Under the pieces are notes generated by a model. That model did no database searches, was not told the DNA's origin, and saw nothing but the letters and a program-made list of their open reading frames with translations. Source: Mobula hypostoma (taxonomy: Eukaryota). From it: 64,000 nucleotides of DNA. This document shows positions 1,690-62,175 of this stretch, piece by piece (the first letter of the stretch is position 1; every line of letters starts with the position of its first letter). Position numbers and translations under genes: made by a program. The stretch spans positions 12,214,001 through 12,278,000 of the forward strand of contig NC_086109.1 in the NCBI RefSeq assembly GCF_963921235.1. Direction: 5' to 3'.

Positions 1690-1944
1690 TTATTCTGAAT
1701 CCTGGGGAGTGCCAGGAGAGAAAGCTTTCTGTCTGGGCTTTGCAGGTTGGCTTTGAAATTTGATATCTGCATAGGTGGTGTTGTCCTCATCCATAACAGA
1801 GTGTCCTGCTCGTGACTTCCTTTTAAATTTCATGCTTGCATACACAGTTTCATTTTCATTGTTAGCTGATTGGGCAGCTGCCTCATTGTTTCGAACATGG
1901 TGTAGATCTGCATAAACGATGTTTTCTCCCAACGTGGCCGTTTC
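1690..1944 (-). CDS. Gene L terminal exon: cytoplasmic tail with ITIM (IVYADL), ITSM-like (TVYASM) and ITSM (TTYADI)
   Basis: Acceptor ctttatcatttcag, phase 0, 84 codons to TAA at 1690, three spaced tyrosine motifs. Intermediate cytoplasmic exons between 8435 and 1944 could not be resolved. Confidence 0.85.
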   Translation of the reverse strand, partial: ETATLGENIVYADLHHVRNNEAAAQSANNENETVYASMKFKRKSRAGHSVMDEDNTTYADIKFQSQPAKPRQKAFSPGTPQDSE

Positions 1945-4039
1945 CTGAAATGATAAAGAAATTCCATTATCTATTTTATTTCTGATGAATGTGGAAGGTG
2001 AGGGTGTGAAAGGTAACTGGGACAAGGCAGGATAATAGGGTGGGAAGGAAAATAAATCAGTCATGATTGAAGTGCAGAGCAGTCCTGATGGGCCAAATGG
2101 CCTAATTCTGCTCCAATACTTTATGGTCTATGGTCTTGTCCGTGGATTTATTTTTGTTACTTATCTTATGTTTATAGCTTGACTTCTGCTCCCATCTGTA
2201 AGTAGAAACATATTCACTACTCTATAAAACAATTGGATACTCTTGCCAACATCTACCAGATCACCCTCAGTTTTCTGCTTTTTAATAAACCCTAATCCCG
2301 TCATTCAGCTTGTAGAATATAATTTTTCAGAATGTTTGATAACAGTTGATGACTGAGTAGCAGTGATCCTTAGTGAGGACCCGCTACTAAATGTACAACA
2401 ACAGCATGTTGCTTTACGACACCAACACACTAAACTGGTCCAAGGTGTTTCACAGGGGTTCAGCAAGAGAAGAGGTTGAAAATGAAGTTGGGAATTATTT
2501 AGGCAAATTACAATACTTTTATGGTTTACAGTCTAGTTTGTTGTATTAAGTTAATTGATCACATGCGTGTCATTAGGTGCCTCGTGGGTTGGAAGCAGCT
2601 GTTACTCTGCTGTATCTCTAACCAACATAAGTTAAGAGGACAGAATTGCAGGAGTTCATGGAGTTGTCCAGAGGGTGGGATTTGGGCAGCTGAAGCTACT
2701 GATATTAGTGGTGGGATTCCGAGACTGGAGGATGCACAAGAGAACACACAGTTCTCTGAGGGTACAGCTCTGGGAGGGGAAGTGATGCCAACAAGGAAAA
2801 TGTACAGCAGAGCAGAATCCTCCAACAATCTCCACCCTGCAGTTACCTTTGGGAATAAGAAAGGCAAATGATAATATTGAGAAAAGAATTGAAGCTCTTT
2901 TATAATATTGAACCCAATCCTTCAATAAGGAAAAAGTTAAATCAATTAGGACATTAATTATGAAGGTAAGAATAGCAAACAAGCTGAAAATAGTGGAAAA
3001 TATCAGTAAAGAAGATTGTTGATAACAGATTGAAGAGACAATAGAATATTCATACTAGTGTCAGGATTGAGGGGTAGAGTGAGAGAATGGGTGGGTGACA
3101 TCAGCATAGAACAGATATTTACTGCACTACCCAATGAAACCCATGTGAGCAAATTAACCTACTAACTTCTTTGGAATGTGGGAGGAAACTAGAGCACCCA
3201 GAGGAGACCCACGCAGTCACAGGGAGAACATACAAACTACTTACAGTGAGGAGCGGAAGTGAACACAGATCGCTGGCACTGTATAGTCTGACACTAACCG
3301 CTGTGCTACTGTGCCATCACCAATTTATTGTTCTGATTAGACATGTCCTACTTTTTCTGATTTCACATCACAGTTTGAAACTCAGAAGGAATATACCAAA
3401 TGCAAACTGAAGTGCCATTGAACCCAAAGGGAGATTTACACAATTAGATACTCAATCTCTAACAGTAGAGAAAGGACCAATCTCACTCTTCACCATTCAG
3501 TAATGAAAATGAAGCCTGGAGCCACTTTGAAGAATAGTCACATAAAATGTTATAGATACACTTAAGGAAAAGATGGATAAACACCAGAGAAAGCGACAAA
3601 TAACTATCGGGATATGCTGATGGAATTCAATGAGAGTATCTTCGGAGGTTTCTGTAAAATATTGATACTGGAATGGCCTAGTGGGGATGGATGATGTGCA
3701 AGCTCCCCTGTAATCCAATTGTTAAACATGCTGACGCGTTCGGACAATTAATACCTAGAAACATAGAATACCAACAGCCCAATACTGGCCATTCGGCCCA
3801 CAAAGCTATGCAGAATATGTCCTTCCCTCAAATATTACCTAGGGTTACTCATAGCCCTCTATTTTTCTAAGCTCCATATACTTACCCAGGAATCTCTTAA
3901 AAGATCCTATCGTATCTGCCTCCACCACAGTCGCTGGCAGCCCGTTCCATGCACGCAGCACTCCCTGCATAAAAAAACTTACCCCTGACATGTTCTCTTC
4001 ACGTACCTCTCAGCACCTTGTCAGGAACAGATAGAAACA

Positions 4040-4102
4040 CATACATATATATGTATGTGTGTGTGTGTGTGTGTGTGTGTACATATCTCTCTCTCTCTCT
4101 CT
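4040..4102. repeat. Compound microsatellite (TA)n-(GT)n-(CT)n
   Basis: Directly visible. Confidence 0.95.
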
Positions 4103-5254
4103 TTGAGCTACCATGGCACCGAAAAAATCTCAGAACTACAGTCCACGGCAACCCCAGCTGCAACACAATAATGATCCTCCACACAGAGCAAACCTCTGCT
4201 CCGGTTACTGCACAGTATTCAGAAAGGATCATATTGTTTTATACCCCGCCTTCCGTGCTACTGAAAACTGAGTTTTTCCATCTTTGAGCATTGTAATGAA
4301 GGATTTGGATTTGAAATTTTATTTTTCTTTTTATTACTACAAATTCTGTCTGATCTGCTGAGTATTTCCTGTAATGTCTGTGCGTGCTTTCAGATAATAT
4401 TTCTCCTTCACAATATGATGGATCAGATTACCTGACAATATTCACACTGTTCAATGAACATTTCACTGATCTCTCCAGGACTCTGTGGCAGATTGTCCCT
4501 CAGGCGGAAGGAACAAACTGCCCAAAAATAAAAATCACCTTATTATCCAACAGACCATTAAAACCACCTTTTGAATTCAACATTGAGATCAACAATTTCA
4601 TACAGAATCCAAATGTCCTACCCTCAATGAACATGCTGAGCGTTCCTAGCACTTTTTCTGCCTATATCTCAGGTATTGATCATTTAGGGAATTTCTCTTT
4701 GGAAAAGAATGCACTCATTTTGTTCAGATCTTTGCAACAAGCAGTGACTGGGGAATAATACTGTGCTGAAAGCAACTGTCTGGTTTGTTGGGGGAGGGAG
4801 AGAGAGGCCTAGAACTACATCACGGGGAGCAGTTGAATTATTAGTTATAATATTCAGCCAATGAGTTATATTCTGTCAGCCAATGAGTTGAAGGCTGCTG
4901 GGGGTTTATTTTCCAGTGATCAACTCCATTTCCCCATTTGATGATAACACACAGAAGATCATTGTATGCACAGTTCTCTTCACTGGTTACAAAGTCTGTT
5001 TCAGGGACAGAAGATTATTTATTTATTTGGTGATACATTGTGGAGTAGGCTCTTCCGGCCCTTTGACCCACGTCAACTTATTAATCCTGACAAACCTGAT
5101 TAACCTTAACCTAATCATGGGACAATTTGCAATGATCAAATAACATACCTGGTATGTCTTTATACTGTGAGAGAAAACTGGAGCACCCCAGAAAAACCCA
5201 CACATTCGATGGGGAGGACGTGGAGAGTCCTTACAGAATGACAGCAGAATTGAA

Positions 5255-7845
5255 CTCTGAAATCTGCGTGGTGCTCGGACACAGTGGCACTGACAAGCTC
5301 CTGCAGCCTGGACCAGGAACACCTATCGGTGAAGTGTCGTCCCTACTATCTGCCATGGGAATTCACCTTGGTCATACTGACAGTGGTCTACATTCCCCCC
5401 CAGGCGGACGTGGAGTGTGCTCTGAACATACTGTATGCCAACATCAGTGAACTTGACACCAGGTATCCGGAGGCTTTGCTCGTTACAGCAGGGGACTTTA
5501 ACCAGGCCAACCTCCGAAAGGTGCTGGCAAAGTTATGCCAACATGTCTCCTGCGCCACTAGAGGCCCGAATATACTTGACCACTGCTATACAGCAGTCAA
5601 GGATGCCTACCGTTCCGTCCCACGACCTCACTTCAGAAAATCGGACCATCAGGCCGTACTCCTCTTCCCGGCTTACAAACAGAAACTGAAGCGGGAGGTC
5701 ACGGTGTCAAAAGCAGTGTTGCGTTGGACAGAGGAAATGGATGAGGTCCTCCGTGACTGCTTTGAATTGGTGGACTGGTTACTATTCAAAGACTCGGCAG
5801 CTAACTTTGATGAGTATGCCTCAGCTGTCACGGACTTTATTTGGAAATGCACGGAGGACTGTGTGTCTCGCAAGATGATCTGGGTATTCCCTAACCAGAA
5901 ATCTTGGATGAATTATGAGATCAAGTCCCTTTTGAAGGCTAGAGCTGCAGCTTTTAGGTCCGGGGATACCAGTCGCAACACGGAATCCAGGCGTGAACTC
6001 CGGAAAGCCATTAAGGGCGCCAAGAGGCAATATCGAGCCAAGTTGGAAGTCCAGGCTAACCAGAGGGATGCCAGTAGACTATGGCAGGGTCTAAATGAGA
6101 TTACTGGGCATAAAGAAAAGGCTGGGAATATCAATAACTGTGGCGCTTCGCTTCCTGACGAACTTAACGTATTCTACACAAGATTCGAACAGAAGAGAGG
6201 TGTCCCGCTCCCTCCGGATGAACCGGACCTGGTGGCATCGAGATTCATCGTCACCGAGGAGGACGTTAGAAGGGCCTTCCTGAAGATAAATCCATGGAAG
6301 GCGACAGGCCCAGATGGCGTCCCGGGATGGGTTCTCCGGGCCTGTGCAAGCGAGCTAGCTGGAGTGTTTGCTGACCTCTTCAACTGCTCCTTGCTTCAGT
6401 CTAAGATCCCCGCGTGCTTTAAGAAAGCAACGATAATCCCAGTGCCGAAGAAGAGCAAGGTGGCATGCCTGAATGACTATCGACCTGTGGCTCTGACGTC
6501 AATTGCTATGAAGTGCTTCGAGCGATTGGCTATGGCACACATCAACCACAGCCTACCGGTCAACCTCGACGCTTTGCAATTTGCCTACCGGAGCAACAGA
6601 TCAACGGCAGATGCCATCTCTCTGGCCCTACATTCCTCCTTAGAACACCTGGAGAATAAAGACGCATATGTAAGGCTCCTTTTCATTGACTACAACTCTG
6701 CCTTTAATACCATTATTCCAAATAAACTGATTCCTAAGCTCCGGAACCTGGGCCTTAGCACTCAGATCTGCAGCTGGATCTTCAATTTCGTCACAGACAG
6801 GCTGTAAAAATAGGGGACAAGCTCTCCTCTACAATCACTCTGAGCACCAGTGCCCCACAAGGCTGTGTACTCAGCCCCCTGCTGTACTCACTGTACACCC
6901 ATGATTGTGTAGCCAAGTTTCCATCAAATTCAATATATAAGTTTGCTGACGACACAACAATTGTAGGCCGTATCTCGAGTAATGATGAGTTTGAGTACAG
7001 AGAGGAAATTAAGAACCTGGTGACATGGTGCAAAGACAATAACCTTTCCCTCAACGTCAGCAAGATGAAGGAATTGGTTGTTGACTTCAGCAGGAGTAGC
7101 GGACCGCACGACCCAATTTACATCGGTGGTGCGCAAGTGGAACAAGTCAGAAGATTTAAGTTCCTCAGGGTCAATATCACAAATGACCTGACTTGGTCCA
7201 ACCAAGCAATGTCCACTGCCAAGTAGGCCCACCAGCGCCTTTACTTCCTGAGAAAATTGAAGAAATTTGGCCTGTCCCCTAAAACCCTCACTAATTTTTA
7301 TAGATGCACCGTAGAAAGCATTCTTCTTGGGTGTATCACAACCTGATATGGAAGTTGTCCTGTCCAAGACCGGAAGAAGCTGCAGAAGATCGTGAACACG
7401 GCGCAGCACATCACACAAACCAATCTTCCGTCCTTGGACTCACTTTACACCGCACGCTGTCGGAGCAGTGTTGCCAGGATAATCAAGGACACGACCCACC
7501 CAGCCAACACACTTTTCATCCCTCTTCCCTCCAGGAGAAGGCTCAGGAGTTTGAAGACTCGTATGGCCAGGTGTGGAAACAGCTTCTTTCCAACTGTGAT
7601 AAGACTGCTGAGCGGATCCTGACCCGAATCTGGGCTGTAACCTCCAAATATCCGGACCTCCCTCTCGGGTTTTTTTGCACTACCTTACTTCCATTCTTCT
7701 ATTTTCTGTTTATGATTTATAATTTAAATTTTTAATATTTACTATCAATTTGTAATCCAGGGAGCAGGAAGCGCAGAATCAAATATCGCTATGATGCTTA
7801 TACGTTCTAGTATCAATTGTTTGGCGACTATAGAATATAAAGTAT
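5255..7845 (+). mobile_element. Rex1/Babar-type LINE, 5'-truncated, with several stops and frameshifts
   Basis: ORF 5284-6807 (CRPYYLP, VYIPPQA, AGDFNQ, FIDYNSAFNTI); downstream QGCVLSPLLY and FADD read in another frame; 3' tail present. Confidence 0.9.
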
Positions 7846-8434: not shown

Positions 8435-8525
8435 CCCTGTTTTTCTCTTCAGGTAGCAAAGTAGACAAACGGCAAGTAGTAGGAGAAGAATCCCAACGAC
8501 ACTGATCATAGTTGTGTAAGTGTAT
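8435..8525 (-). CDS. Gene L transmembrane exon, uncharged TM (YTYTTMISVVGILLLLLAVCLLCYLKRKTG)
   Basis: 91 nt, phase 2/0, acceptor tccttttctttaccgcag, donor GGG|gtaggt. Hydrophobic run followed by a KRK stop-transfer; the phase matches the stalk exon. Confidence 0.85.
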
Positions 8526-9229
8526 CTGCGGTAAAGAAAAGGAAAGGGTCAGTCCTGGGTCACCATTTACTCTTGGCCATTTGTAAAGTCTGACATTTAC
8601 ACAGCATTTTTCATGAGCTCAGGTTGTCTGCCGCTCAGAAAATTATCATTAGACACTGTTGACTGTGTAGGAACTTACAACAGTTAATCTGTTCACTCCA
8701 AAGTCTCACAAGTAGAAATGTGATCATGACCAATGATAGAGATGTAGGTTAGAAAATAACTACTATCCAGGCCATTCAGGAATCCTACCATATCCCTTTA
8801 CAAACATTTCATCAGAACTCTTGCATAAAAGAATTGATTGGCGGTTTCTTCTCTGTCAGACACCATTGCTGACCATGTAGACAAACCTGTTCTTGGAACG
8901 GCCCCCATGGTTTTCTTTGTTTCGTGGCTGTCTGGACTCTTGTTTGGCTTGGACGAGTCAGGCTGAAGGGCCTGTTGTTTTAATATATAACAATGACTTT
9001 ATGGCTCAGGACATGAGCTTCAACTTCTATAATTAAATTATGAAATATTTAGTGTAAGAAAATTATCTTTGACATCTGGACAAGAAAATCAGGAATACTC
9101 AGTTTCCAATACACGATTTCATTGAAGTTAATCATGTCAAGCATGTTTATCACGAGTTAAAGAGAAACAAAATTTCTCTCTCAGATGGGTCTGGTTGAAA
9201 CCACCTGTAGAGAGAACCTTGTACTTTAC

Positions 9230-9302
9230 ATTTTATTTGTAGATTCTTTGCTTTGTTCAGTCGTCGTTTCATTCACAGTATTTTCACAGAAATGAATCGG
9301 CC
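9230..9302 (-). CDS. Gene L stalk exon (xPIHFCENTVNETTTEQSKESTNK)
   Basis: 73 nt, phase 1/2, acceptor ctttcaacag, donor AT|gtaaag. A paralogous exon lies at 55646-55721. Confidence 0.82.
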
Positions 9303-11924: not shown

Positions 11925-14900
11925 CCATGCTGTTGACTTCAATGACATATCTGCAGGTGCTGGCATTGTTGGAGATGGATACATTGAATACATAGAAACA
12001 TAGAAACATAGAAAATAGGTGCAGGAGTAGGCCATTCGGCCCTTCGAGCCTGCACCGCCATTTATTATGATCATGGCTGATCATCCAACTCAGAACCCAG
12101 CCTTCCCTCCATACCCCCTGACCCCTGTAGCCACAAGGGCCAAATCTAACTCCCTCTTAAACATAGCCAATGAACTGGCCTCAACAGTTTGATGTGGCAG
12201 AGAATTCCACAGATTCACCACTCTTTGTGTGAAGAAGTTTTTCCTAATCTCGGTCCTAAAAGGCTTCCCCTCTATCCTCAAACTGTGACCCCTCGTTCTG
12301 GACTTCCCCAACATCGGGAACAATCTTCCTGCATCTAGCCTGTCCAATCCCTTTAGGATCTTATACGTTTCAATCAGATCCCCCCCTCAATCTTCTAAAT
12401 TCCAACGAGTACAAGCCCAGTTCATCCAGTCTTTCTTCATATGAAAGTCCTGCCATCCCAGGAATCAATCTAGTGAACCTTCTTTGTACTCCCTCTATGG
12501 CAAAGATGTCTTTCCTCAGATTAGGGGACCAAAACTGCACACAATACTCCAGGTGTGGTCTCACCAAGGCCTTGTACAACTGCAGTAGTACCTCCCTGCT
12601 CCTGTACTCGAATCCTCTCGCTATAAATGCCAGCATACCATTCGCCTTTTTCACCGCCTGCTGTACCTGCATGCCCACTTTCAATGACTGGTGTATAATG
12701 ACACCCAGGTCTCGTTGCACCTCCCCTTTTCCTAATCGGCCACCATTTAGATAATAATCTGTTTTCCTATTTTTGCCACCAAAGTGGATAACTTCACATT
12801 TATCCACATTAAATTGCATCTGCCATGAGTTTGCCCACTCACCCAACCTATCCAAGTCACCCTGCATCCTCTTAGCATCCTCCTCACTGCTAACACTGCC
12901 GCCAAGCTTCGTGTCATCCGCAAACTTGGAGATGCTGCATTTAATTCCCTCATCCAAGTCATTAATATATATTGTAAACAACTGGGGTCCCAGCACTGAG
13001 CCTTGCGGTACCCCACTAGTCACCGCCTGCCATTCTGAAAAGGTCCCGTTTATTCCCACTCTTTGCTTCCTGTCTGCTAACCAATTCTCCACCCACACCA
13101 ATACCTTACCCCCAATACCGTGTGCTTTAAGTTTGCACACTAATCTCCTATGTGGGACCTTGTCAAAAGCCTTTTGAAAATCCAAATATACCATATCCAC
13201 TGGTTCTCCCCTATCCACTCTACTAGTTACATCCTCAAAAAATTCTATGAGATTCGTCAGACATGATTTTCCTTTCACAAATCCACGCTGACTTTGTCCA
13301 ATCATTTCTCCGCTTTCCAAATGTGCTGTTATCACATCCTTGATAACTGACTCCAGCAGCTTCCCCACCACCGACATTAGGCTAACCGGTCTATAATTCC
13401 CCGGTTTCTCTCTCCCTCCTTTTTTAAAAATTGGGGTTACATTAGCCACCCTCCAATCCTCAGGAACTAGTCCAGAATCTAACGAGTTTTGAAAAATTAT
13501 CACTAATGCATCCACTATTTCTTGGGCTACTTCCTTAAGCACTCTAGGATGCAGACCATCTGGCCCTGGGGATTTATCTGCCTTCAATCCCTTCAATTTA
13601 CCTAACACCACTTCCCTACTAACATGTATTTCACTCAGTTCCTCCATCTCACTGGACCCTCTGTCCCTTACTATTTCTGGAAGATTATTTGTGTCCTCCT
13701 TAGTGAAGACAGAACCAAAGTAATTATTCAATTGGTCTGCCATGTCCTTGCTCCCCATAATCAATTCACCTGTTTCTGTCTGCAGGGGACCTACATTTGT
13801 CTTTACCAGTCTTTTCCTTTTTACATATCTATAAAAGCTTTTACAGTCCGTTTTTATGTTCTCTGCCAGTTTTCTCTCATAATCTTTTTTCCCCTTCCTA
13901 ATTAAGCCCTTTGTCCTCCTCTGCTGAACTCTGAATTCCTCCCAGTCCTCAGGTGAGCCTCTTTCTCTGGCTAATTTGTATGCTACTTCTTTGGAATTGA
14001 TACTATCCCTAATTTCTCTTGTCAGCCACGGGTGCACTACCTTCCTTGATTTATTCTTTTGCCAAACTGGGAAGAACAATTGTTGTAGTTCATCCATGCA
14101 ACCTATAAATGCTTGCCATTGCATATCCACCGTCAATCCTTTAAGTGTCATTTGCCAGTCTATCTTAGCTAATTCACGTCTCATACCTTCAAAGTTCCCC
14201 TTCTTTAAGTTCAGAACCTTTGTTTCTGAATTAACTATGTCACTCTCCATATTAATGAAGAATTCCACCATATTATGGTCACTCTTACCCAAGGGGCCTC
14301 TCACGACAAGATCGCTAATTAACCCTTCCTCATTGCTCAAAACCCAGTCCAGAATAGCCTGTTCTCTAGTCGGTTCCTCGACATGTTGGTTCAAAAAACC
14401 ATCCCGCATACATTCCAAGAAATCCTCTTCCTCAGCACCTTTACCAATTTGGTTCACCCAGTCTACATGTAGATTGAAGTCACCCATTATAACTGCTGTT
14501 CCTTTATTGCACACATTTCTAATTTCCTGTTTAATACCATCTCCGACCTCACTACTACTGTTAGGTGGCCTGTACACAACTCCCACCAGCGTCTTCTGCC
14601 CCTTAGTGTTACGCAGCTCTACCCATATCGATTCCACATCTTCCCGGCTTATGTCCTTCCTTTCTATTGCGTTAATCTCTTCTTTAACCAGCAACGCCAC
14701 CCCAACTCCCCTTCCTTCATGTCTATCCCTCCTGAATATTGAATATCCCTGAACGTTGAGCTCCCATCCCTGGTCACCCTGGAGCCATGTCTCTGTGATC
14801 CCAACTATATCATAATCATTAATAACAATCTGCACTTTCAATTCATCCACCTTATTACGAATGCTCCTTGCATTGACACATAAAGCCTTCAGGCGCTCTT

Positions 14901-15283
14901 TTACAACTCTCTTAGCCCTTTTTAATGCTTGCCCTGGATTTGTCAGCCTGCCACTTTTACTTTTACTTTTACTTTTCTCCTTTGTACTTTTTGCTTCTAC
15001 TCTCACTTTACACCCCTGTGTACTTATACGTCACTGGACTTCTCTCCATTAGCATTTGAGGCTTTGCAATAATACAGATGGTTGTTGTATTTTAAGGATT
15101 GGCAAAGTAGTTCCAGTTTATTGGTATTAGATATATTTAAATCCATAGATGGGGTCTTTTCATACCATGAGTACTGATTGGGAAGGGATCCATTGGCAGA
15201 CTCAGAGGACACTGACACGGAGTCCGCACAACTTGAGCCATTTATTTGTGGTGAAAATCGAAGCAAAGGAACAGACACATTTT
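11925..15283 (-). pseudogene. Gene L C2b exon, split by a CR1 insertion (parts 15030-15283 and 11925-11991)
   Basis: Removing the LINE and one ATAC copy restores exactly 321 nt in frame (...EKSSDVFNVSISNNASTCRYVIEVNSM G|gtaagt). The insertion creates TAA at 15024-15026, and the B-strand Cys is Ser here (VSVSSES). Confidence 0.9.
11992..15025 (-). mobile_element. Young CR1 LINE, near-complete ORF2 (APE endonuclease + RT), 5'-truncated
   Basis: ORF 12370-15006 (878 aa; VIMGDFN, GVPQGSVLGP, FADD) continues after one frameshift in a G7 run into 12090-12347. Has a (TTTCTATG)n tail and a 4-nt ATAC duplication at 11988-11991 and 15026-15029. Confidence 0.95.
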
Positions 15284-16436: not shown

Positions 16437-16720
16437 TTGGCACAGTAACACGATGGTTACCACAATGCTTTACAGTCCCAGCGACCCGGGTTCAATTCCT
16501 GCCACTGTCTGTGAGCTGTTTGTACATTCTCTCCGTAACTGCAAACGTTTACTCTCGGTGCTCCGGTTTCATTCCACAGTCTGAAGAAGTACCGATTAGT
16601 GGGTTAATTAGTCATTGAAAATTGTCCAGTGTTTTGGCTTGAGTTAAATCTGGAGAAGCTGGGTGACAGGACTTGAAGGGCTAGAAAGGCCTATTCCACA
16701 CTCTTCCTCAATAAATAAAC
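16437..16720 (+). mobile_element. tRNA-derived SINE (elasmobranch HE1/V-SINE-like); duplicated at ~61262-61545
   Basis: B box gggttcaattcc at 16488-16499 and a conserved body. Related copies at ~3105-3320 (-), ~5030-5250 (-), ~53685-53900 (+), ~54498-54775 (+) and ~56360-56850 (+). Confidence 0.75.
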
Positions 16721-17107
16721 AAAACCGATAAATAGATAGATAAATAAATAAATAGTGAGCTAGCTGGATAGATTGATAGGTGATGAATTAATAAATGAAT
16801 GACTAAATAAATGTTACCAGCACTGGAGTGTATAAGCTGTGGGCAGTAGTTGGACAATCTTGCTGTGTTTTCGTTGGAGAGTCAGAGGCTGAGAAGAGAT
16901 GTGATAGAAGTTTATAAAGTTATAGAAGTCATAGATAGATGGTCAGAATCTTTTTCCCAGGGTTGAAATATCAAATAATTGTGAGCATAGTTTTAAGATG
17001 ATTAGGGGCAAGTTTAAATGATGTTTGAGAAACAAGATTTTTTTTTACAATGAGGTAGTAACTGCATGGAACACACAGTCAGACCAGCTGATGGAAGAAG
17101 ACCAGCT

Positions 17108-17283
17108 TCTTCCACACTGCTCATTTTGCCCATTTGTATTCACTAACGATGTGCATTGGTGACCCCACATGAAGCACAAATACTTTGTGTGTGAACGGTA
17201 CACTGGTGCATAGTGACAGTTGATTGTGATTGCTCTTCCCACAACTCCTCTTACTTTATCTTCTGCCTGTAAAGCACATAAAA
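17108..17283 (-). pseudogene. Gene L second V exon (V2), 3'-truncated pseudo-exon
   Basis: Acceptor ccatttccctcag, then VLCALQAEDKVRGVVGRAITINCHY...KYLC...QCGR. Homology stops there: no F-strand Cys, no donor, and the sequence runs into an old CR1 fragment. Confidence 0.85.
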
Positions 17284-21566: not shown

Positions 21567-21887
21567 TGGTGCCATTATTTTTCTGTTCATAACGACAGAA
21601 CTCTCCATTGTTGAAGATTTTCACATTTACTACTCCACTGGATTTTATTCCAAGCCTATTCGAGGCATTGCAATAATATTGATGGGCCTGGAGATCTGAG
21701 GATTGACAAGGTAGAACCAGTTCATTGGTGTCTGAGATCTTTTGATCCAGAGTTGAGTTTTTTTTATGCCATGTGTACTGAATTGGAAGGGTTCCCTGGA
21801 GAGACTCACAGGACACTAACACCGAGCCCCCGAGACGTGAGACATTTGCTGGTGACCGATATCGAAGCACAGGAACAGACACAGGTT
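21567..21887 (-). CDS. Gene L exon: C2-type Ig domain (C2a), intact
   Basis: 321 nt, phase 1/1, acceptor cctttccacag, donor A|gtaagt. Reads EPVSVPVL...VSCES...QYTW...YYCNASN...EFCRYEQKNNGT. Confidence 0.88.
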
Positions 21888-25163: not shown

Positions 25164-25200
25164 CAGGTAGGAAAACAATCAGAAGAATTGAAGCCCACAT
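25164..25200 (-). CDS. Gene L exon 1: signal peptide (MWASILLIVFLP + phase 1)
   Basis: ATG at 25200, 37 nt, hydrophobic codons, followed by donor G|gtaagt. Joins in frame to the V exon (VSGA|FWAEK). Confidence 0.85.
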
Positions 25201-31415: not shown

Positions 31416-31424
31416 CGCCAGTTA

Positions 31425-51190: not shown

Positions 51191-51429
51191 CATGGAGGAC
51201 GGGTCTGCCTACAATCTGTCCAGCTGTCATCTTTGCCAGTCATCACCTTTGTCATATATAGATCATGGCAGTCCCTAGCTCAGAGAGTGACATAATCAAT
51301 GGGATACCACTATTTAGATCAGGCTTGCTGCCAAGATGCCTTGAATTTATTTTTCTGGTGGAAGAAAGTGTTTATGATGAGAAGATTGTGCTCAGCACAT
51401 ATGGTGAGTAGTCAGTCGCACATATAATA

Positions 51430-51528
51430 TTATTCAGTACCCGGCATTACTTTCCATTGGTCAGTGTACGCAAGACCTTTGTACAGTGACAACAATTGTG
51501 CACACAGTGAATAACATTGCAGTATTCT
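51430..51528 (-). CDS. Gene R probable terminal exon (phase 0 reading RILQCYSLCAQLLSLYKGLAYTDQWKVMPGTE*)
   Basis: Acceptor attattacacag. It shares the gtcactgtacaaaggtctt core and its position relative to the acceptor with three downstream copies; minus-strand AATAAA at 51346-51351. The reading frame is ambiguous (see findings). Confidence 0.6.
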   Translation of the reverse strand, partial: RILQCYSLCAQLLSLYKGLAYTDQWKVMPGTE

Positions 51529-51974
51529 CTGTGTAATAATATTCCTAAATACATAAGGAAAATATATGCTTATCAGAAATGAAATCTGGCAATGATGGAA
51601 ATACTCCACAGGTCAGCAGCAACTACAAGGAGAACAACAAAACTAATAATTCAGGTCAACATGTTTCAATAAAATCATTCCATTGGGATGTCTTAATCTG
51701 AAGATTATTTGATTCCCTCTCCAAAAAATTTTCTGCCATTGACACCTTAAGGAAAATTGAGTCCTGTGAATTCATGAGTGAAGTCATATTCTAAACAGAA
51801 TGAATTGATGCATTTTTTTTATTGAAAACAAACTTTATGATGAAGCATTTTCATTAATATATTTATAATTGTTTATTGAACTAACCAACAGTGAAGACAG
51901 TAATTTGAATATAACAGAACAGATTTTAACATGAAAAAGAATCTACCGCTTTCCTGACATATATGACGAATAAA

Positions 51975-52135
51975 CTTTTCTCGTGCTTCAAACGGGTACA
52001 GGTATTGATCATAACCAAAGTTTCGATGACAAACTCTGCCATCTTCTTCAGGGATGATGAAGAAGATGGCAGAGTTTGTCATCGAAATGTTGGTTATAAT
52101 CGATACCTGTACCTGGATGGAAGCCTGAGAAGAGA
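51975..52135. repeat. Long inverted repeat: two Penelope-type hammerhead-like termini joined back to back
   Basis: Perfect 30-bp arms at 52021-52050 and 52058-52087 with a 7-nt loop, extending 26 bp further with 4 mismatches and more loosely beyond. Confidence 0.85.
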
Positions 52136-53257
52136 TGTTAACATTGTAAAAGAATTCTGAGCAGTTCATGATCATAAAAAGGTTAAGGCTAAAGTTAAAT
52201 GTGTTGCAAGTGGATTTCCATTAACCAAAGCCAGTATCTTGAAGCATGACAAGATTATTTTGTTTGATTTCACCTTCATTAAGTCAATGATTTAATGACT
52301 AGAGATTAATTCTGTATAAAAGTTCCACAGGGCTTGAACAGTGACACTTAATCTTGGTGCAAAACTCCCCCACAGTCGGTGTAATCTGGGATCATTCACT
52401 TTATCTCAAGGACGAGGCTGTGAGGATCTGATTGATCAAGTCTCTGTAAAAGCAAAAGTGAAGTTATCAGATTGTTCAACACCGGGAACTATGCAATACT
52501 GTATGATGCTGTGTGCCTGCGATGTTGCACTCAAGTGTTGTGTATGCAACAGGTTGAGCATTGGGAATAAAGTGGTCACTGACTTTGATTTACATTTCAT
52601 GCAGGCACCTCACAACAGAATTCTGTGTGAAGCACAGTGTCCAATATATTTTCTTGTAGAGCACTGGACTTCATTCTACACATGGACAAAGCGTGAAAGC
52701 CTACTTACAGTATATCATCTTCATGGAACTTTAGTTTGACAAAAGGTTAAAAGTTCATATGAGAATGCTTTTTTTTTCCTTCAAATGATCAGCATATTTG
52801 AATGAATTTGCAGTGAAGGAGAATGAGAGGTACAGTAACTCGATAGATATGTACAAGAAGATTGCAGGTAAAAAATTGAATGCACAGCCAGAGACACTTT
52901 CCAAGGCAGAAATGTTTAACATGAGGGGGCATAATTTAAAGAGATTGGAGAAATGCATTGGGGGAATGTCAGAGGCAAGTTCTTTTTACACAGAGAGCTG
53001 TGAATGAGTGGTACCTACTACCAGGGTTGGTGGTGGAGGCAGATACGTTAGCGACATTTAAGAAACTCTTACAAAAATGCATGGATCACAGAAAAGTTGA
53101 AGGCTATATAGGACAGAAAGGTTAGTTTGATCCTCGAGTAGGTTAAGAGGTCAGCACAACATGGTGGGCCAAAGGGCATGTACTGTGTTGTACCATCGGA
53201 TGTTCTATGCTCCAATTCATGGAAACCTTTTGGGAGCATCTACTAACCTAGGCTTAC

Positions 53258-53348
53258 CTTTTTGTCTCTCCTGAACCATGTGACAGCGATGGTCCAGATC
53301 CCCAGCAGAGCAAAGAACAGCCAGCGCCCCACTTTCCATATCATGTAA
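53258..53348 (-). CDS. Gene R transmembrane exon with basic residues (YMIWKVGRWLFFALLGIWTIAVTWFRRDKK)
   Basis: 91 nt, phase 2/0 (same length and phases as the gene L TM exon), acceptor ccactttgttcag, donor AAG|gtaagc. Confidence 0.85.
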
Positions 53349-54779
53349 CTGAACAAAGTGGAAGAGATACAGAATCAGTGGGAGGAGAAGAGACACCTTT
53401 GTATTTGAAATATTTACCTCCTGGTTCCTCTGTGAAATTAGTGAAGTGGAGCAATAAAAGCAGCAAGGCCAGGGAAGTTCAGCTGGGAGATTAATCTCAT
53501 GCTGGACTGAGGGAGGGAAGATAACCTATGATCATCATTTGGAGAAATAATTACTGAAACACAACTGCAGATACTGTATGTCGCAACAGTGGATAATGCA
53601 GATAGATTTAGTAATGGCAGGAAAGGAAATAATGCGGTTGTGTAACGACTAGTCTGGGGATAACCTAATGTCATTGAGATGGTCTGTTGTGGTTAACACA
53701 ATGATTTACAACAGTCAGCTCTAACATTGGGTTCAATTCCTGCCTGTTTGTAAGGAGTTTGTACATTCTCCCAGTGACTGCATGAGATTCATCCGGGGGC
53801 TCCGGTTTCCTCCCAGGTTCCAAAGACATATTGGTTAGGGTTGTGGGCATGCGAAGTTTGCACTGGAAGCATGCCAAAACTTGTGGGATGCCCAGCACAA
53901 TCTTTGCTGACTTGATTTCATGCAAAATGATACATTTGTCAGGAAAAGTAGACGAGGCTTGACCAAAATCGAGCAGCAGAGACAATTTAGCAGTAAACGA
54001 TACTCTACTGATAGACTACAAAATAACAAGTCATGATGGGCCACAGAACAAGAAAGAACAGAAAAAAAACACAGCAGGCATCAAGGTAAACTTTATGCAT
54101 GGAGAGTGAAGGCCAGTCGGTTTGACGAGTGAACAAGGACTGTGGATGATAACTGGGGTTAAATAGGCTGCAGGTAATCAGTCTAGAATGAGGGGCAGGT
54201 GAATTCTATTAGTCAGGTGGAGATTGGGAGGTTCCTGCAGGTGCAGGCCTGACAGCATTTCAACGTATGTTTCAATGTACATGTGACAAATATAGACAAT
54301 CTTGCCGAAAGAGGACACAGATCTTCAGAAGTTTGACAATGAAACCTCACAGACAGATACTGTGTGAAAACTGATAAATGATCCAGAATTAATTGAAGAA
54401 AGGAGTTGGGGATGAAATACACAGATAAATAAGGACAAATTTTTAAAAATCCAGAAAATTAATCAGGAAGGTGATATCAAAAATCTCAGTATCCCTTGGG
54501 CAGCACGGCAGCGTGGCAATTAGCATGACTGTATTACAGCTTGGGGTGTCAGAGTTCAATTTTAATTTTTTCTGTAAGGAGTCTATTTGTCCTCCTCATG
54601 GAATGCGTGGGTTTTCCCTCGGTGCTCCAGTCTCCTCCCAGAGTCCAACAATGTATCAGTTGGTTGACTAGTTGCTCGTTGTAAATTATCCTGTGATTAA
54701 ATTGGGGGTTGCTAGGCAGTGTGGTTTGAAGGGCCGGAAGGCCCTATTCCATGTTGTTTCTCAGCCAATAGAATAAATT

Positions 54780-54857
54780 AAGGGTTCCAAACTTTTTTAT
54801 GCCATTGACCAACACCATTAAGGAAGGAGTCCATGGACCCCTGGTTGGGAACCCCTG
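54780..54857. mobile_element. ~78-bp MITE, probably hAT-like
   Basis: Inverted ends agggttccaaac / ggttgggaacccctg; no clear TSD. Confidence 0.5.
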
Positions 54858-55645
54858 ATTTAGAGGGTAAACAACTAGAACATCTAGGAAAAGTGAGATG
54901 AAATGAGCAAAATGCACTTTATGATGATAACAGAGAAGGAAACGAATAAGAAGAAAATCAAATACTTAAGGGAAAAGCACATAGAAGATAGAACAGTACA
55001 GCAAAGTACAGGCCTACCAGAATCAATATAAAACTGCAAAACCTGCATGTTCAAACAGAGTGTAGGAGACAGCAAAGTGTGCAAATACAAAAAGAGAGAA
55101 ATAATAATAATTAAATAAGAAATAAATACTGAGAACATGAGTCAAAGAGTACTTGAAAGTGAGAATATTGGTTGTGGAAAAAAGCCAAGGGAAAAAGGTG
55201 CTGGCTATTCAATCTACTTATGTTTCCTATCATCTTGTACACCTCTATCAAGTCCTCTCTTATTCTCCTTCTGTCCAAAGAGAAATTACATAGCTCATTC
55301 AGCCTATCCTCATAAAACATGTTGTCTGTACCAGGAAGCATCCTGGTAAATCTCTTTTCATGTTGCTACTTCCTACGATAATGAAGTGACCAGAACTTAA
55401 CAAAATACTCCAACTGTTATGCATAAATTATTAAATGTTTAGGGTAAGAAGATTAACTTTGATCTCAGGTTTGACACCTTTACTAGAAAATCAGGAATAC
55501 TCAATTTCCAGTACCTGATTACACTGAAGTTAATCATGTCAAATGTGTTTAACACCAGTTAAAGAGAAACAAATTTCTCTCCCAACTGGCTCTATTTGTA
55601 AGCGGAAGCAGTGAAGCCACCTGTGGAGAGAAACTTATACTTTAC

Positions 55646-55721
55646 ATTTTATCTGATGATGATTCTTTCCTTTGTGCAGTTGTAGTTTCTTTCACGGTAT
55701 TTTCACAGAAATGGATTGGCC
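55646..55721 (-). CDS. Gene R stalk exon (GPIHFCENTVKETTTAQRKESSSDK)
   Basis: 76 nt, phase 1/2, acceptor ttcttttaacag, donor AT|gtaaag. Homologous to 9230-9302. Confidence 0.82.
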
Positions 55722-56544
55722 CTGTTAAAAGAAAAGAAAATTCAATTTCAAACAAGAGAAAATCTGCAGATGCTGGAGATCCAATAAACACGCACAAAAT
55801 GCTGGAGGAACTCATCAGGCCAGGCAACATCTATGGAAAAGAGTAAACAGTCAGCATGTTGGTCCGAGACCCTTCGTCAGGACTGCTGAAATTCAATTTC
55901 ATCTGCTTTGTAACTGCAAGGACAAGAAATCACAATTGCTGGACCAATAGTTACTTGGGCGTGGTGGACCAAATGTGATCTGTTACTCAATGAACACTTA
56001 AAGATTAAAGATGTGATTTATTTGTCACATGTACATCAGAACATACAGTGAAATGCATCATTAACAACAACGACCGACACAGAGTATGTGCTGGTGGCAG
56101 CTTGCAGGTCTAGTACTGAGGAAACTATAATCCTATTTAAACGTGTGAAATCGTAAGAGAAAGGTCCTGCCAGGGAGCTGGCCTCAGCCTGCATGGGGAG
56201 ATCTCTTTCTGGGGTTCCATCACTCTGTACAGACATGAGGTTAGCTGTACCTGAGTATACAGCGAAACAATGTTTCAAGTAGACTTTTTATCCAACAGGA
56301 TAATGCAGGATTTCTCAATGAAAAGGCAATGACGTTTAAAACAATATACAGAGAAACAGAACACCGTGGGTGCCACGGTAGGGTAGTGTTTATAGCAACA
56401 CTGTCACAGTTCTGGCATTTGGGAACTTGGAGTTCAATTCCGGTGCCATTCTGTGAGGAGACTCTGTATTACGTGGGGTGTGTGGGTTTTCTCCGGATGC
56501 TCTGGTTTCTTCCTAAAGTCCAAAGACATACCAGGTAGGTTAAT

Positions 56545-56740
56545 TGGTTGTTGTTGCTCTCCGTGCCTGAGGCACATCAGGCAGCAACTTTACTGTTTGG
56601 TCAGCATTTGTCTACTTCTTACGAAGACCAGTTTTTAACTCGACACTCAACCTCGCATAGATGGAAAGCGTGCTGGGAGCCGGACGGATTTGAACCTCGG
56701 ACCGTTCGCCAGTGCTGATGTCACTACATCACCGGTCGGC
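56545..56740 (-). mobile_element. Second tRNA-derived SINE with (CAA)n tail, nested in a SINE
   Basis: Minus strand shows an A-box-like tgatgtagtg, B box ggttcaaatcc and a 3' caacaacaac. The host SINE continues on both sides. Confidence 0.6.
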
Positions 56741-59700
56741 TCAGTTAATCGCAGGGTTAGGTTAGGGTTAATTGAGGTTGTTGGGGGTTGCTGAGCCTGT
56801 GTGGTTTGAAGGGCCGGAGGGGCCTAGAACACACTGTATTGCTAAATGAATAAATATATATATTGTAAAAGTCTAACTTTTACATTGTTCTCTCATTCTG
56901 TTCCTCTTACCCAGCTCTGGCTTTCTGCATTTGCACTACTGACAGAAACCTTGACCATTCCCAGAATCTGTCATAAAATTCTGGCAACAATTTTCTATGC
57001 ATATAATTTCTTTGATTCTCTTGCTGGTGGGAGAGTTTCTACCCCTCCACTGAGCACTCAGGTATTTTAATAAAGCTTTTCATTTTTGAAACATTTGTTC
57101 AAACTGCACAGAGTTACAAACTGAAGTACAAGAAAAAAATGATGTTCAATATTCTCCTGGAATTGTCCCCATTCTGGACACTGCAGCCTGTGAAACATCC
57201 CTTTCAACATGAACTCCATCCATTCCTCAGGGAATACTTCATGCATTAAAGAGATCTATTGTGAATCAATTAGAGCCAAGAAAATGCATCATGTTCAGTA
57301 AAAGCAGCAAAGCTGAGTATTAGAATTAGTTCAGAATTCAAAACAAAACAAAGTAATTGATTAAAACATTGAAAATATAGAACGTGAACAAGTTTGTAGA
57401 ATAAATATATATCAACATAAAAACTTCAATAGGTATGCAAAGAGATTAATTAAAATAAATGTAGGATATCTAACAGACTGAAGTAGACAATTTACTATGG
57501 GACAACCAATTCAACACAATGGTTTTGTCTTTTGTCCTTCATCACATTTCCTTCTACCAATGTCAGGCTAATTGCTCTATGATTTCCTCTTTTCTCTTCA
57601 CCTCCTTTTAAAATAGCTTGTTTAGCTTCTCTGCAATCCATTGGAAAATTTAAAATGGCCAGCAATGCGTCTCTATTTTTCTCATGCCAATTCCTTATTT
57701 TCTCTGGAATGTAGAGTATCAGAACCTGGTGATTTCAGTCACATCTGCTTTCCCAATCCATTCCCCTATTATTGGTGAATAACTACCTTCTGTCTTTCAA
57801 CAGGCCCTATGACATTCCAGAAACCAGTCTGCTGATCCTTTGCTCACCTCCTTCCATACCAAGATCCTCTTTCGTCAGACCAAATCTGCACACCATATCA
57901 GTGGCCCGAGAGAAAGGAACAAGTTTAAGTTTGACCGATTTAACCTTCAGTCCAGAATGGAAATTTTGAGTATGAGCCAAATCGGGGCACCAGGTCCCAG
58001 GCATGAGAGTGTATTGAAGAGGCAGGGACTGGGTCCAAGAACGAGGAACGAGCTGCTGTTTGGCTGAATTCAGCACCCGGCCAGATTGGAAAGGTCAGGG
58101 TGACAGGACTGGACCTGAGGGACAGTCTGATCTGGGGCTAACTGCTGCTCAAGGTTTACTCATCTCTGTGCTGAACTGAGTCTGTGGCCTGCAACTAACG
58201 GGTCCTAGATCAGCTGTGACTGGCTTCATGGCTGTGGACTCACTTTCATGCACTTCAGTCCTGAATGTTATTTGCATGATTTGTTTTTTTTCCCCTCTGC
58301 ATTTTGGGTGTTTAACGGTCTTTTTTCAATAGGTTCTATTGCATTTTTGTTTGGCGGCTGTTTGTAAGGAGACAGATTTCAAGGTTGTATATTGTGTGCA
58401 TACTTTGATAATAAAAGTATTTTGAACTTTAAACTTTGGTCCTAACTGATAAAAGCCCTGTAACCTTACAGTGTTTCATGCTTGTTCCTTTACTCAAATC
58501 TGCTTTCGAAAGTCCAGATACAATTTGCATTCATTATGCCCTGCTGCATCTGCATGTTTACCTTCAGTGAAAGATGTACAAAGACACCCAAAACTCATTA
58601 TCATCCCCCCTTTTCTATTCTATTGTCATCCAGGTAATTACCTACATTCCTGTCATTGCCATAGTCTTAAAAATACTAATTTATTTTGCCTAAGTATTTC
58701 CATTTTGCTGAATAGGGGAAATAGTAAGACCCAATTCAAATTATTCAAGCCTCCAGTGGTTTAGTAGTCAAATGTTTCCAATAGAACCCTACCCTGTTCA
58801 ATTAATTTTCTTTGCCTGAAACTGATCATCATAAAATTAATTTGAGTTCAATCTTTCTACACTTTTGCTTGGAGACCCAGTGAACAAGGATACACAGATT
58901 TTTGAGGTCACATCTGCAATTCCATCTACAAGGATAAGATATGTGGGTTTTCAGGACACAGACATTCACGATCCATGTGGTCTCTGTACTTTTTATCAAG
59001 ATACAACTGCTTTGATTTTATGACTCATTACGGTATGAGAAAATATGGATAAAATTCTACAAGCAGCCCTGCCATGAGAAGACAGCACCAATCTTCAAGG
59101 ACTGCTGCAATCCAGACCATGTTTCCTCTCACTACTGCCATTGAGAAGGAGGTCTCGCACCACCAGGTTGAGAAACAGTTATGATCCTTCAACAATCAGG
59201 CTCCTGAACCAATGCGGATAACTTCGCTCACTTCAACACTGCACTGATTCCACAACCAATGGACTCGTTATCCAGGACTCTGCAACTTATGTTCTCAATA
59301 TTATTTATTTATTTGCTTGTTAATAATTCTTTCATTTGTATTTTTACAGTTTGTCTTCTTTTCTACATTGGTTGTTTGTCCATCTTTGATGTGTGTAGTT
59401 TTTAATTGATTCTGTCTGATTTATTTGTATCTACTGTAAAAGTTTCTACTGTGAATGTCTTCAGGAAAATGAATCTCAGGGTAGTATATGGTGACATATA
59501 TGTAATTTAAGTTTACTTTGAGCTTTGAAGTGGGTTACCTTACAAGTACTATCTTAATGACATAAATATTACCAGACGAGACACATTCACACCCAGCCAA
59601 CGAGAGCAGATCAGAGGCACGAGACCCTGTGCTGAGAGACTTACGTTTGGACTGCTGTGTCGAAAGGCTTTTCATCCTCTGAAAGGTGGTGACAACAGAC

Positions 59701-59806
59701 ACTCCATGTTCCTGAGTGAAGTTCCAACAACACAATATCCAACACACATCAGTCATTCAGTTGTACTCCATCAACCATCAGAAAGAAATAACCCTGCACC
59801 ACTTAC

Positions 59807-60127
59807 CCATGCTGTTGACTTCAATCGCATATCTGCAGGTGCTGACACTGTTGTAGATGGACACATTAAGTACTTCACTGGACTTTTCTCCATCAGCATT
59901 TGAGGCTTTGCAATAATATAGATGATTTTTGTATTTTAAGGATTGGCAATGTAGATCCAGTTTATTGGTATTAGATATGTTTAAATCCATAGATGGGGTC
60001 TTTTCGTACCATGAGTACTGAATGGGAAGGGATCCATGGACAGACTCACAGGACACTGACACGGAGTCCGCACAACTTGAGCCACTTGTTTGTGGTGAAA
60101 ATCGAAGCAAAGGAACAGACACATTTT
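59807..60127 (-). CDS. Gene R C2b exon, intact
   Basis: 321 nt, phase 1/1, acceptor ttcttttccacag, donor G|gtaagt. Reads ENVSVPLL...VSCES...YSW...YYCKASN...STCRYAIEVNSM. Confidence 0.9.
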
Positions 60128-61957
60128 CTGTGGAAAAGAATCAGTGAACATCTGAAAATCAAGCACACGAAAGATTTCAGCAGTTCTGTATCTCAAGCAG
60201 GACCCACCAGTTTGGAACCTCTGCAGCTCCTCTACCTCTCAGTGTCTCTGCATCCTCAGAGCTGCCTGAACTGCCATGTCTGACATTAATCCAGAACACA
60301 ATATAACTCCAGAACAGAACAGCAGTGAAGACACTATGTCAGTCACTCTCTCTTAGCAGTAAGGAGACAGTCTAAAGTGGCACCTAACAGCTTGACTCTG
60401 GAAAGGCAGCATTTGTGGGTGTCCAGGAAAGCTCCCCATTATGTGAAAGCAGAAAATTGTTAGATAAATACAAACTGAATGGTGACTTGAGGGAGAGAGT
60501 ATAATTGTAATTGTTTCAGTGGCCTACAGCAGGAAGGGAACCTGTTAGTACAGTACATAGGAGCAGAATTAGGCCATTCAGCCCATTGAGTCTGCTCCAC
60601 CATTCCATCATGGCTAAATCTATTCTCCTTCTTTCTCTCTGTAACCTTTGACACCCTATAATCAATAACCTATCAAACTCCACTTTAAATATACCCACAG
60701 TTTACTTTGGCAATGAATTCCACATATTCATCAGCTTCTGCCTCACAAAATTCCTCCTTAACTCTCTTTTAAAGGACGTTCGTCTATTCTGAGTCTGTAC
60801 CCTCTAGTCCTAGATGCTTGCACTATTGGAAACATCCTCTCTACATCCACTGAAATTTTCAATTTTTGATAGCTTTTGATGAGATCCTCCCTCATTCTTC
60901 TAAACTCCAGCAAGTACAGGCCCAGAGCCTTCAAACACTCCTCATACATTAGGGAAGTTTGATGTCACCTGGAATTTAATATCAGGATCCCTTTAGAATT
61001 GATGTACAGAGAGTTCTTGGGGTTCAAGTCAATTGCTCCCTGAAAGTGGCAACACAAGTGGACATAACGGTAATGAAAGCATTCTGCACATTTGCCTTCT
61101 TCATTCTACATGTTGGAGACTAAAGCTGACAAGGCATTTTGTAGCTTCATAAAACATTGATTAGGTCACATTAGGAATATAATATGTATTTCTGGTTGCA
61201 ACATTATAGGAAGGATGTTGAGGTTTTGGAGAGGGTAAGGAGGCTCACCATGATGTCACCAGGGTTGGCACGGTAACACGATGGTTACCACAATGCTTTA
61301 CAGTCCCAGCGACCTGGGTTCAATTCCTGCCACTGTCTGTGAGCTGTTTGTACATTCTCCCCGTGACTGCAAGCGTTTACTCTCGGTGCTCCAGTTTCAT
61401 CCCACAGTCTGAAGAAGTACCAGTTAGTGGGTTAATTAGTCATTGAAAATTTTCCAGTGTTTTGGCTTGAGTTAAATCTGGAGAAGCTGGGTGACAGGAC
61501 TTGAAGGACTAGAAAAGCCTATTCCACACTCTTCCTCAATAAATAAACAAAACCGATAAATAGATAGATAAATAAATAAATAGTGAGCTAGCTGTCTAGA
61601 TTGATAGATGATGAATTAATAAATGAATGACTAAATAAATGTTACCGGGACTGGAGTGTATAAGCTGTGGGCAGTAGTTGGACAATCTTGGTGTGTTTTC
61701 GTTGGAGAGTCAGAGGCTGAGAAGAGATGTGATAGAAGTTTATAAAGTTATGGAAGTCATAGATAGATGGTCAGAATCTTTTTCCCAGGGTTGAAATATC
61801 AAATAATTGTGAGCATAATTTTAAGATGATTAGGGGCAAGTTTAAATGATGTTTGAGAAACAAGTTTTTTTTTACAATGAGGTAGTAACTGCATGGAACA
61901 CACAGTCAGACCAGCTGGTGGAATGGGAGATCATAACAATATTTTAGCTCTGGGAAA

Positions 61958-62175
61958 TTATTCACTTTTTCCCTGGTATGTAGTATCTCTCATTGTCATT
62001 CTTCCACACTGCTCATTTTGCCCATTTGTATTTACTAACGATGTGCATTGGTGACCCCACATGAAGCACAAATACTTTGTGTGTGAACGGTACACTGGTG
62101 CATAGTGACAGTTGATTGTGACTGCTCTTCCCACAAATCCTCTTACTTTATCTTCTGCCTGTAAAGCACATAAAA
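61958..62175 (-). pseudogene. Gene R V2 exon, truncated with premature stop (…QCGRMTMRDTTYQGKSE*)
   Basis: Near-identical to 17108-17283. It extends a little further into the V fold, then stops; no F-strand Cys; KYWC is KYLC. Confidence 0.82.

Follow-up and report, generated by a model that had tools for sequence, protein, structure and literature searches.

Two probable tandem genes for modular domain immune-type receptors, with dead exons, in a transposon-rich stretch of the lesser devil ray genome

We describe here a stretch of 64,000 nucleotides (nt) from the lesser devil ray, Mobula hypostoma (contig NC_086109.1, positions 12,214,001 to 12,278,000), which we will call the window, and which is likely to hold two tandem, same-strand genes for modular domain immune-type receptors (MDIR), referred to below as L and R. 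All the receptor exons of the window are carried by its minus strand. As a preliminary description of this DNA had put it, one of the genes carries a module of the inhibitory type and the other a module of the activating type: L ends in a tail with an immunoreceptor tyrosine-based inhibitory motif (ITIM), and R has an arginine in its transmembrane (TM) segment. On the homology of V1 and the tail in L and of the TM in R, both genes are, as far as sequence can tell, members of the MDIR family, with L as an MDIR2-type and R as an MDIR5-type receptor, and they are apparently two further, unannotated copies in the MDIR cluster of this ray. What is distinctive here is the presence of damaged MDIR copies together with a steep gradient of identity between them.

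Gene models and family membership

The L model is made of six exons, which are given here in the order of transcription.

25164..25200, minus strand: leader exon, with its ATG at 25200, MWASILLIVFLP and a phase-1 GTAAGT donor; tblastn matches it to the leader of P0035
22870..23184, minus strand: V1 exon, an intact CD300/pIgR-type V of 315 nt, phase 1-1 (Pfam V-set, 4.3e-13)
21567..21887, minus strand: C2a exon, an intact FCRL-like C2 of 321 nt, phase 1-1, ending in ...EFCRYEQKNNGT (Pfam Ig_2 and Ig_3, ~1e-6)
9230..9302, minus strand: Cys-stalk exon, GPIHFCENTVNETTTEQSKESTNK, 73 nt, passing from phase 1 to phase 2
8435..8525, minus strand: TM exon of 91 nt, the uncharged MISVVGILLLLLAVCLLCYL followed by KRKTG
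1690..1944, minus strand: last coding exon and stop, with IVYADL at 1920-1903, TVYASM at 1848-1831 and TTYADI at 1779-1762

Once joined through canonical splice sites, the leader, V1, C2a, stalk, TM and tail exons encode an open protein of 363 amino acids (aa), in an open reading frame (ORF) of 1092 nt. The model requires the skipping of a dead V2-C2b cassette that lies in the long intron between C2a and the stalk, which all the exon phases allow. It can be aligned end to end with two annotated two-domain proteins, P0207 and P0209, at 68%, and over residues 1-362 with skate MDIR2, at 47%. The leader has its own ATG and a start that resembles a signal peptide, and V1 and C2a, which sit upstream of the block that L and R share, are the only intact ectodomain exons of L. 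The TM is strongly hydrophobic, with a Kyte-Doolittle mean of 2.96 over 19 residues. The neutral TM and the three tyrosine motifs that had been assigned to L are all present, the motifs in the last exon (1944-1690). In particular, IVYADL conforms to the consensus of an ITIM, and TTYADI to that of the immunoreceptor tyrosine-based switch motif (ITSM), T-x-Y-x-x-V/I, which in receptors of the SLAM type binds SAP or EAT-2. The earlier claim of an ITSM-bearing tail is in keeping with the consensus at TTYADI and not at TVYASM, which has a Met at +3 and is instead a Y-x-x-M motif of the p85 type.

The intron that separates the TM exon of L from its tail exon (8435-1944) holds a long interspersed nuclear element (LINE) with a reverse-transcriptase ORF, at 5254-7700 on the plus strand; the window as a whole is rich in transposons, and its ORF list contains several LINE reverse-transcriptase ORFs.

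Four exons of R with open frames fall within the window, which ends at base 64000; the 5', membrane-distal exons of this gene would lie beyond.

59807..60127, minus strand: C2b exon of 321 nt, phase 1-1, intact and with both Cys present; 86% identity to P0230 (Pfam Ig_2, 1.8e-4)
55646..55721, minus strand: Cys-stalk exon, GPIHFCENTVKETTTAQRKESSSDK, 76 nt
53258..53348, minus strand: TM exon of 91 nt, YMIWKVGRWLFFALLGIWTIAVTWFRRDKK, with a Lys at 53335-53333 and Gly-Arg at 53329-53324
52396..52443, minus strand: last coding exon, RLDQSDPHSLVLEIK and then a stop, the short tail ending in ...SLVLEIK-stop

These exons join in frame with canonical sites over 536 nt, and the resulting C2b-stalk-TM-tail order is collinear with P0230 of Mobula birostris. 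The R TM reads YMIWKVGRWLFF..., with a Lys and an Arg at its outer end, and at greater length YMIWKVGRWLFFALLGIWTIAVTWF, then RRDKK; within the 19 residues of highest hydrophobicity, the Arg is the third. The tail that follows has 20 residues and no tyrosine. The basic outer end of the TM (53348-53258) and the short tail (52443-52396) are as they had been described.

The stalk exons of the two genes (GPIHFCENTV...) are paralogous and both pass from phase 1 to phase 2, which matches the TM exons. Both TM exons have an AG acceptor and a GT donor, take in 1 nt that completes a codon at entry, and leave in phase 0. This confirms that L (8525-8435) and R (53348-53258) carry unrelated 91-nt TM exons in identical phases.

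The relatives to which the two genes are compared come from a full HMMER scan with V1, which returned 2664 matches; the best 150, together with later matches, were placed on the window by tblastn, which located each of its receptor exons, and the protein set retrieved for this purpose numbered 276, with a first subset of 241. V1 of L is 76% identical to the V domain of skate MDIR2 (E 9e-58), the L tail matches that of skate MDIR3 (E 5e-15) and is also homologous to the MDIR2 tail, and R shares 57% of its TM residues with skate MDIR5 (E 5e-11). As for the type of immunoglobulin (Ig) domain, the PDB matches of V1 are pIgR, CLM-1 (~7e-23, a single-domain chain), NKp44 and TREM, and the best PDB match of C2a is FCRL5 (1.3e-36 over five repeats), which agrees with the labels of CD300-type V and FcR-like C2 that these domains had received.

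The two signalling modules recur well beyond the window. Among the retrieved proteins, 55 from rays, skates and sharks have a tail that aligns with that of L and has Tyr at the same three positions time and again; the middle motif ends in Met in L and in Val in skates. A W-x-V/M-G-R-W motif in the TM, followed by a short tail, is found in 35 retrieved proteins of rays, skates and sharks, and the tails of P0175 and P0217, for example, stop where that of R does. Across the R-type relatives, the TM Arg is invariant, and the position of the Lys varies (K, N, S, T, E, Q, M). None of the 24 proteins with this TM motif in the first set (n=241) also had an ITIM-like tail; the exceptions in later sets, P0268 among them, have the look of fused annotations. 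V-C2 and V-C2-V-C2 layouts both occur among the relatives.

MDIRs are described as multigene families with activating and inhibitory members, similar to CD300, TREM, FCAR and pIgR, and their published make-up includes V and C2 ectodomains, ITIM/ITSM-like tails and Arg-TM forms with short tails, according to PMC3031540 (citing Cannon et al. 2006, Immunogenetics 58:362). In the window, we find an N-terminal V of the CD300/pIgR/TREM type, an ectodomain of mixed V and C2, an ITIM-tailed form with an uncharged TM (L) and a short-tailed form with a basic TM (R). The preliminary description had seen a combination of parts in this locus, and the combination is not new but the known make-up of MDIRs. 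It had also named the skate MDIRs as the nearest family, and this can now be said more firmly than it was claimed, with L and R placed inside the family itself.

Segmental duplication and pseudo-exons

A segmental duplication links the two genes, and several of the exons that it covers are damaged.

55470-64000, minus strand: R copy of the segmental duplication, which pairs with L 9068-19108 and runs off the window
17049..17283, minus strand: L V2 remnant (pseudo-exon), with 58 good codons, then a deletion of 50-65 nt; the ancestral donor is out of phase
61876..62175, minus strand: R V2 remnant (pseudo-exon), with the ancestral acceptor and 70 good codons; indels of 11, 1, 3, 1, 2 and 3 nt
15027..15283, minus strand: 5' part of the L C2b exon, cut by a CR1 element after ...EKSSDV; the canonical B-strand Cys is replaced by Ser
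11986..15026, minus strand: CR1-type LINE in L C2b, ~3 kb, in gene orientation, with a short target-site duplication and a break in the L/R alignment
11925..11985, minus strand: 3' remainder of the L C2b exon, NVSISNNASTCRYVIEVNSMG and a GT donor; matched by P0009 and P0035 in tblastn

A self-comparison gives an identity between L and R of 99-99.8% in the surroundings of V2 and further upstream, then of 96.5-99% as far as C2b, and of 93-95% just after it. Further 3', it is 88% and drops to 78-82% near the stalk, and the homology stops ~160 nt past the stalk exon, so that the TM and tail exons of the two genes lie in unrelated DNA. Such a steep gradient of identity suggests a recent duplication, or a conversion that would have ended inside V2. 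The 99% block ends in the middle of V2 (61999 in R, 17107 in L), exactly at the L deletion. The well-kept 5' half of V2 and its decayed 3' half may have had different histories, for instance through a conversion tract ending within the exon.

The V2 exon is a pseudo-exon in both genes. Its ancestral acceptor is kept at 62175 in R and at 17283 in L, and the 58-70 codons that survive are 80-87% identical to the intact V2 of relatives. In the DNA alignment to V1, in-frame stops in the R V2 precede the ancestral donor at 61876, and family proteins match the L V2 only over 17275-17108. No Pfam V-set match at E<=1 is obtained for the V2 ORF of L or of R, to be compared with 4e-13 for V1. C2b is also a pseudo-exon in L, where the CR1 element that splits it contains an uninterrupted ORF of 886 aa (12373-15030). 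A second copy of the 3' end of CR1 lies in L at 20930-21317 (388 nt); this copy is 98.7% identical, from which the CR1 family is seen to be young, and it may still be active. The two genes had been credited with shared V2, C2b and Cys-stalk exons. The paralogy of these exons stands, and what has to be given up is the intactness of V2 in both genes and of C2b in L.

When the amino-acid changes in C2b are polarised with P0230 as an outgroup, ~11 fall on L, including the loss of the canonical Cys, and ~2 on R, and this small number of R-specific changes suggests that the R exon stayed under selection. C2b shows an excess of change relative to the upstream intron, which is no evidence of diversifying selection, the exon being at the boundary between the 99% and the 93-95% blocks. 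A conserved ORF at L 11090-10992 and R 58274-58176 was rejected as a stalk exon, as no family protein matches it.

Paired receptors in the strict sense, of the KIR, LILR, PIR and SIRP type, have ligand-binding ectodomains that are nearly identical in the inhibitory and the activating partner. The shared 99% block, as it stands within the window, covers only dead V2 and introns. It could continue upstream over V1 and C2a of R, in which case L and R would form a pair homogenised by gene conversion, with nearly identical ligand-binding domains on opposite signalling modules and with their dead exons skipped, and this we find unlikely. If it were true, the locus would offer a case from a cartilaginous fish of the pair evolution of mammalian KIR, LILR and SIRP, and one in which two dead Ig exons, one of them killed by a young CR1, are tolerated by means of exon skipping.

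Transcription, annotation and competing readings

Four same-species RNA runs, all of them small libraries (89-241 Mb of contigs) of unspecified tissue, were compared to parts of the window. The last exon of L and its 3' untranslated region have 25-35% of their sampled 31-mers in these four runs; in the runs of other organisms, the same L 31-mers are mostly found at 4-16%, with one unclassified run at 21%. This hints that L, or a very close copy of it, is transcribed. A search for the products of the window in protein databases was made with a word index, with P0015, P0230 and region 441-1025 of P0151 as queries, and its top candidates, of 183-1794 aa, were scored.

Several points weigh against two intact, working MDIR genes, and we gather them here. 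The share of L tail words in RNA may stem in part from paralogues, whose tails are 89-91% identical at the protein level. In R 51001-57000, the contigs of the four RNA runs leave the TM exon at zero depth, although a gap of this kind is not proof of silence, and neither the stalk-to-TM nor the TM-to-tail joint of R is seen in these four small libraries. The junction of stalk and TM that had been expected in RNA is among these absent joints, and the gap there proves nothing. What the contigs do show on R 51001-57000 is only short repeat-derived pieces with non-canonical joints. No protein at least 95% identical to the window exons is found among the scored database candidates, and the best near-misses, P0230 with 93% over 30 residues that are translated out of frame and P0268 with 91% in the tail, are not products of the window. 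As no M. birostris protein more than 93% identical was retrieved, no annotated orthologue was seen there either, and L and R may be unannotated or may have been called pseudogenes. Moreover, the closest relatives of L have 16-18 additional cytoplasmic residues (...RESKHNTSHGEGNNEIQ...) between TM and tail, and L is without them: in its TM-to-tail intron, nothing resembling the cytoplasmic mini-exon of the relatives (...ESKHNTSHGEGNNEIQ...) scores above control regions, either by regular expression or with a BLOSUM sliding window. Finally, for the adaptor pairing that we propose below for R, no FcR-gamma homologue was found in the shark genomes available to a 2014 survey (PMC4016189).

As a separate observation on this region, the repeats at 55750-56000 and 51001-51200 reach a summed contig word depth of 5,000-34,000 in all four RNA runs, which points to a highly transcribed repeat family.

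Much of this would be explained if one or both genes were decaying pseudogene copies in a fast-turnover MDIR cluster, their intact exons being young remnants that yield no functional receptor. We take this seriously and still hold it to be doubtful. It would account for the dead V2 of both genes and for the dead, CR1-bearing C2b of L, as well as for the missing mini-exon, for the failure to retrieve a window protein or a close M. birostris one, and for the R TM exon that goes unseen in RNA. However, the six L exons and the four R exons have remained open over their 1092 and 536 nt and have kept their canonical Cys and Tyr residues and their splice sites, and they have done so while the skipped C2b of L drifted by ~3.5%. 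The C2b of R, on its side, has accumulated few changes of its own. Skipping the dead exons of L also yields an architecture that is both annotated and published, that of MDIR2, and the words of the L tail occur in RNA above the level of related species. We retain two tandem MDIR genes as the likely content of the window.

Two further readings are highly improbable in our view. The first is the one that the preliminary description favoured, a functional pair with a common V2 and C2b ectodomain, newly mixing a CD300 V, an FcR C2 and SLAM-like ITSM tails. The paralogy of V2, C2b and stalk in L and R speaks for it, and so does a cryptic in-phase donor in R (AAA|GTGAAT at 61966), which keeps the frame open through a half V of 70 residues. 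But this half V, without strands D-G and the second Cys, is unable to fold as an Ig domain; the sole in-phase donor of L, once joined to C2b, creates a TAA stop; CR1 splits the C2b of L; and the combination of parts is that of the known MDIR family. The second, to which we give equally little credence, would make L and R a single read-through gene, pIgR-like and multi-domain, that ends in the ITIM tail of L, while the TM and tail of R would be left out or would serve as a second, alternative 3' end. RefSeq has models of this appearance, P0268 with an R-type TM inside and an L-type tail and P0035 with an R-type TM before a leader. Against it, L starts with an ATG in a leader exon of its own that resembles a signal peptide, the R stop and the L leader lie 27 kb apart in transposon-rich DNA, and a TM helix within an ectodomain is not credible, such models looking like annotation fusions.

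Signalling and comparison with known receptors

If L and R are read as two tandem MDIR genes, their signalling can be proposed by analogy with known ITIM/ITSM and Arg-TM receptors. The L product would require the skipping of the dead V2-C2b cassette, with C2a joined to the stalk. Upon engagement of its ectodomain, the tail tyrosines would be phosphorylated by Src-family kinases, and the phosphorylated tail would recruit phosphatases of the SHP-1/SHP-2 type, and possibly SAP-family or p85 adaptors, which would dampen signalling. R is without a signalling motif of its own, and its outer-leaflet Arg would find its partner in a TM Asp of an adaptor dimer like FcR-gamma or DAP12, which bears immunoreceptor tyrosine-based activation motifs (ITAM). 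At the level of the genes, L and R share a 5' block, duplicated or homogenised recently, that is joined to two unrelated 3' modules, an arrangement typical of receptor pairs with activating and inhibitory members.

The skate MDIRs are the closest known system. They have the same CD300/pIgR-type V with C2, the same tail exon with three Tyr and, in the short-tailed form, the same W-K-V-G-R-W TM, and they too form a multigene cluster with inhibitory (MDIR2, MDIR3) and activating forms (the Arg-TM MDIR5). The skate genes differ in belonging to other species and in being other paralogues, whereas V2 is dead in both of the copies described here and C2b is dead in L, which is also without the mini-exon.

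The mammalian CD300 receptors resemble L and R in their V subtype, with its extra C-C' disulfide (CLM-1, ~7e-23), and in their mixture of ITIM tails with charged-TM members. CD300A and CD300F are inhibitory, and CD300C, CD300LB and CD300E are activating; CD300F also pairs ITIM with Y-x-x-M motifs. In contrast, CD300 receptors have a single V, without C2, as their whole ectodomain, followed by a mucin-like stalk, whereas in L V1 is accompanied by C2a, and in R the stalk is preceded by C2b. The activating CD300 members also carry a Lys or a Glu in the middle of the membrane, rather than an Arg in the outer leaflet. pIgR, the transporter of polymeric Ig, is the best PDB sequence match for V1, and RefSeq calls the relatives 'pIgR-like'. 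However, pIgR has only tandem V domains and a long sorting tail, without C2, ITIM or charged TM, whereas L and R have C2 together with an ITIM tail or an Arg TM. Going by their domain content, then, L and R are not CD300 members, in view of their C2, and not pIgR, in view of their C2 and of the ITIM tail or Arg TM. No pIgR was found in the shark genomes available to the 2014 survey (PMC4016189).

FCRL receptors share with L a C2 of the same kind, C2a being closest to FCRL5, and they also carry ITIM or ITAM-like tails; they are without a CD300-type V, so that the resemblance is limited to C2. The receptors that use FcR-gamma (LILRA, GPVI, NKp46, Fc-alpha-RI, PIR-A), which depend for surface expression and signalling on an ITAM adaptor with an Asp, are like R in that their TM has a basic residue towards its outer end and their short tail is free of motifs; Fc-alpha-RI is mentioned in PMC4016189. 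Their ectodomains are unrelated to that of R.

The locus reveals no new kind of receptor, and it makes no long-standing question newly testable. It shows how well both MDIR signalling modules have been conserved between skates and devil rays, one being the tail exon with ITIM/ITSM-like motifs and the other the short-tailed form with its W-x-V-G-R-W TM. It is also of modest value for the turnover of activating/inhibitory clusters, for the question of how far identity gradients are a sign of gene conversion, and for the tolerance of exon death in modular Ig genes with symmetric phases.

Several public models in the MDIR family look fused or mis-started. P0268 of M. hypostoma (1350 aa) has an R-type TM at 606-638 inside a protein with an ITIM tail, and looks like an annotation fusion; P0035 of H. 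akajei has an activating-type TM ahead of a leader; P0230 of M. birostris has at its start a V exon read in the wrong frame; and P0067 of Rhinoraja longicauda combines TRIM E3-ligase domains with an MDIR V and an Arg TM. In the window, three copies of one repeat at 29348-29443, 34597-34680 and 41676-41747 (minus strand) match the C-terminal 24-32 residues of P0044 and P0194 of M. hypostoma (56-75%), and these two proteins probably end in a transposon-derived exon.

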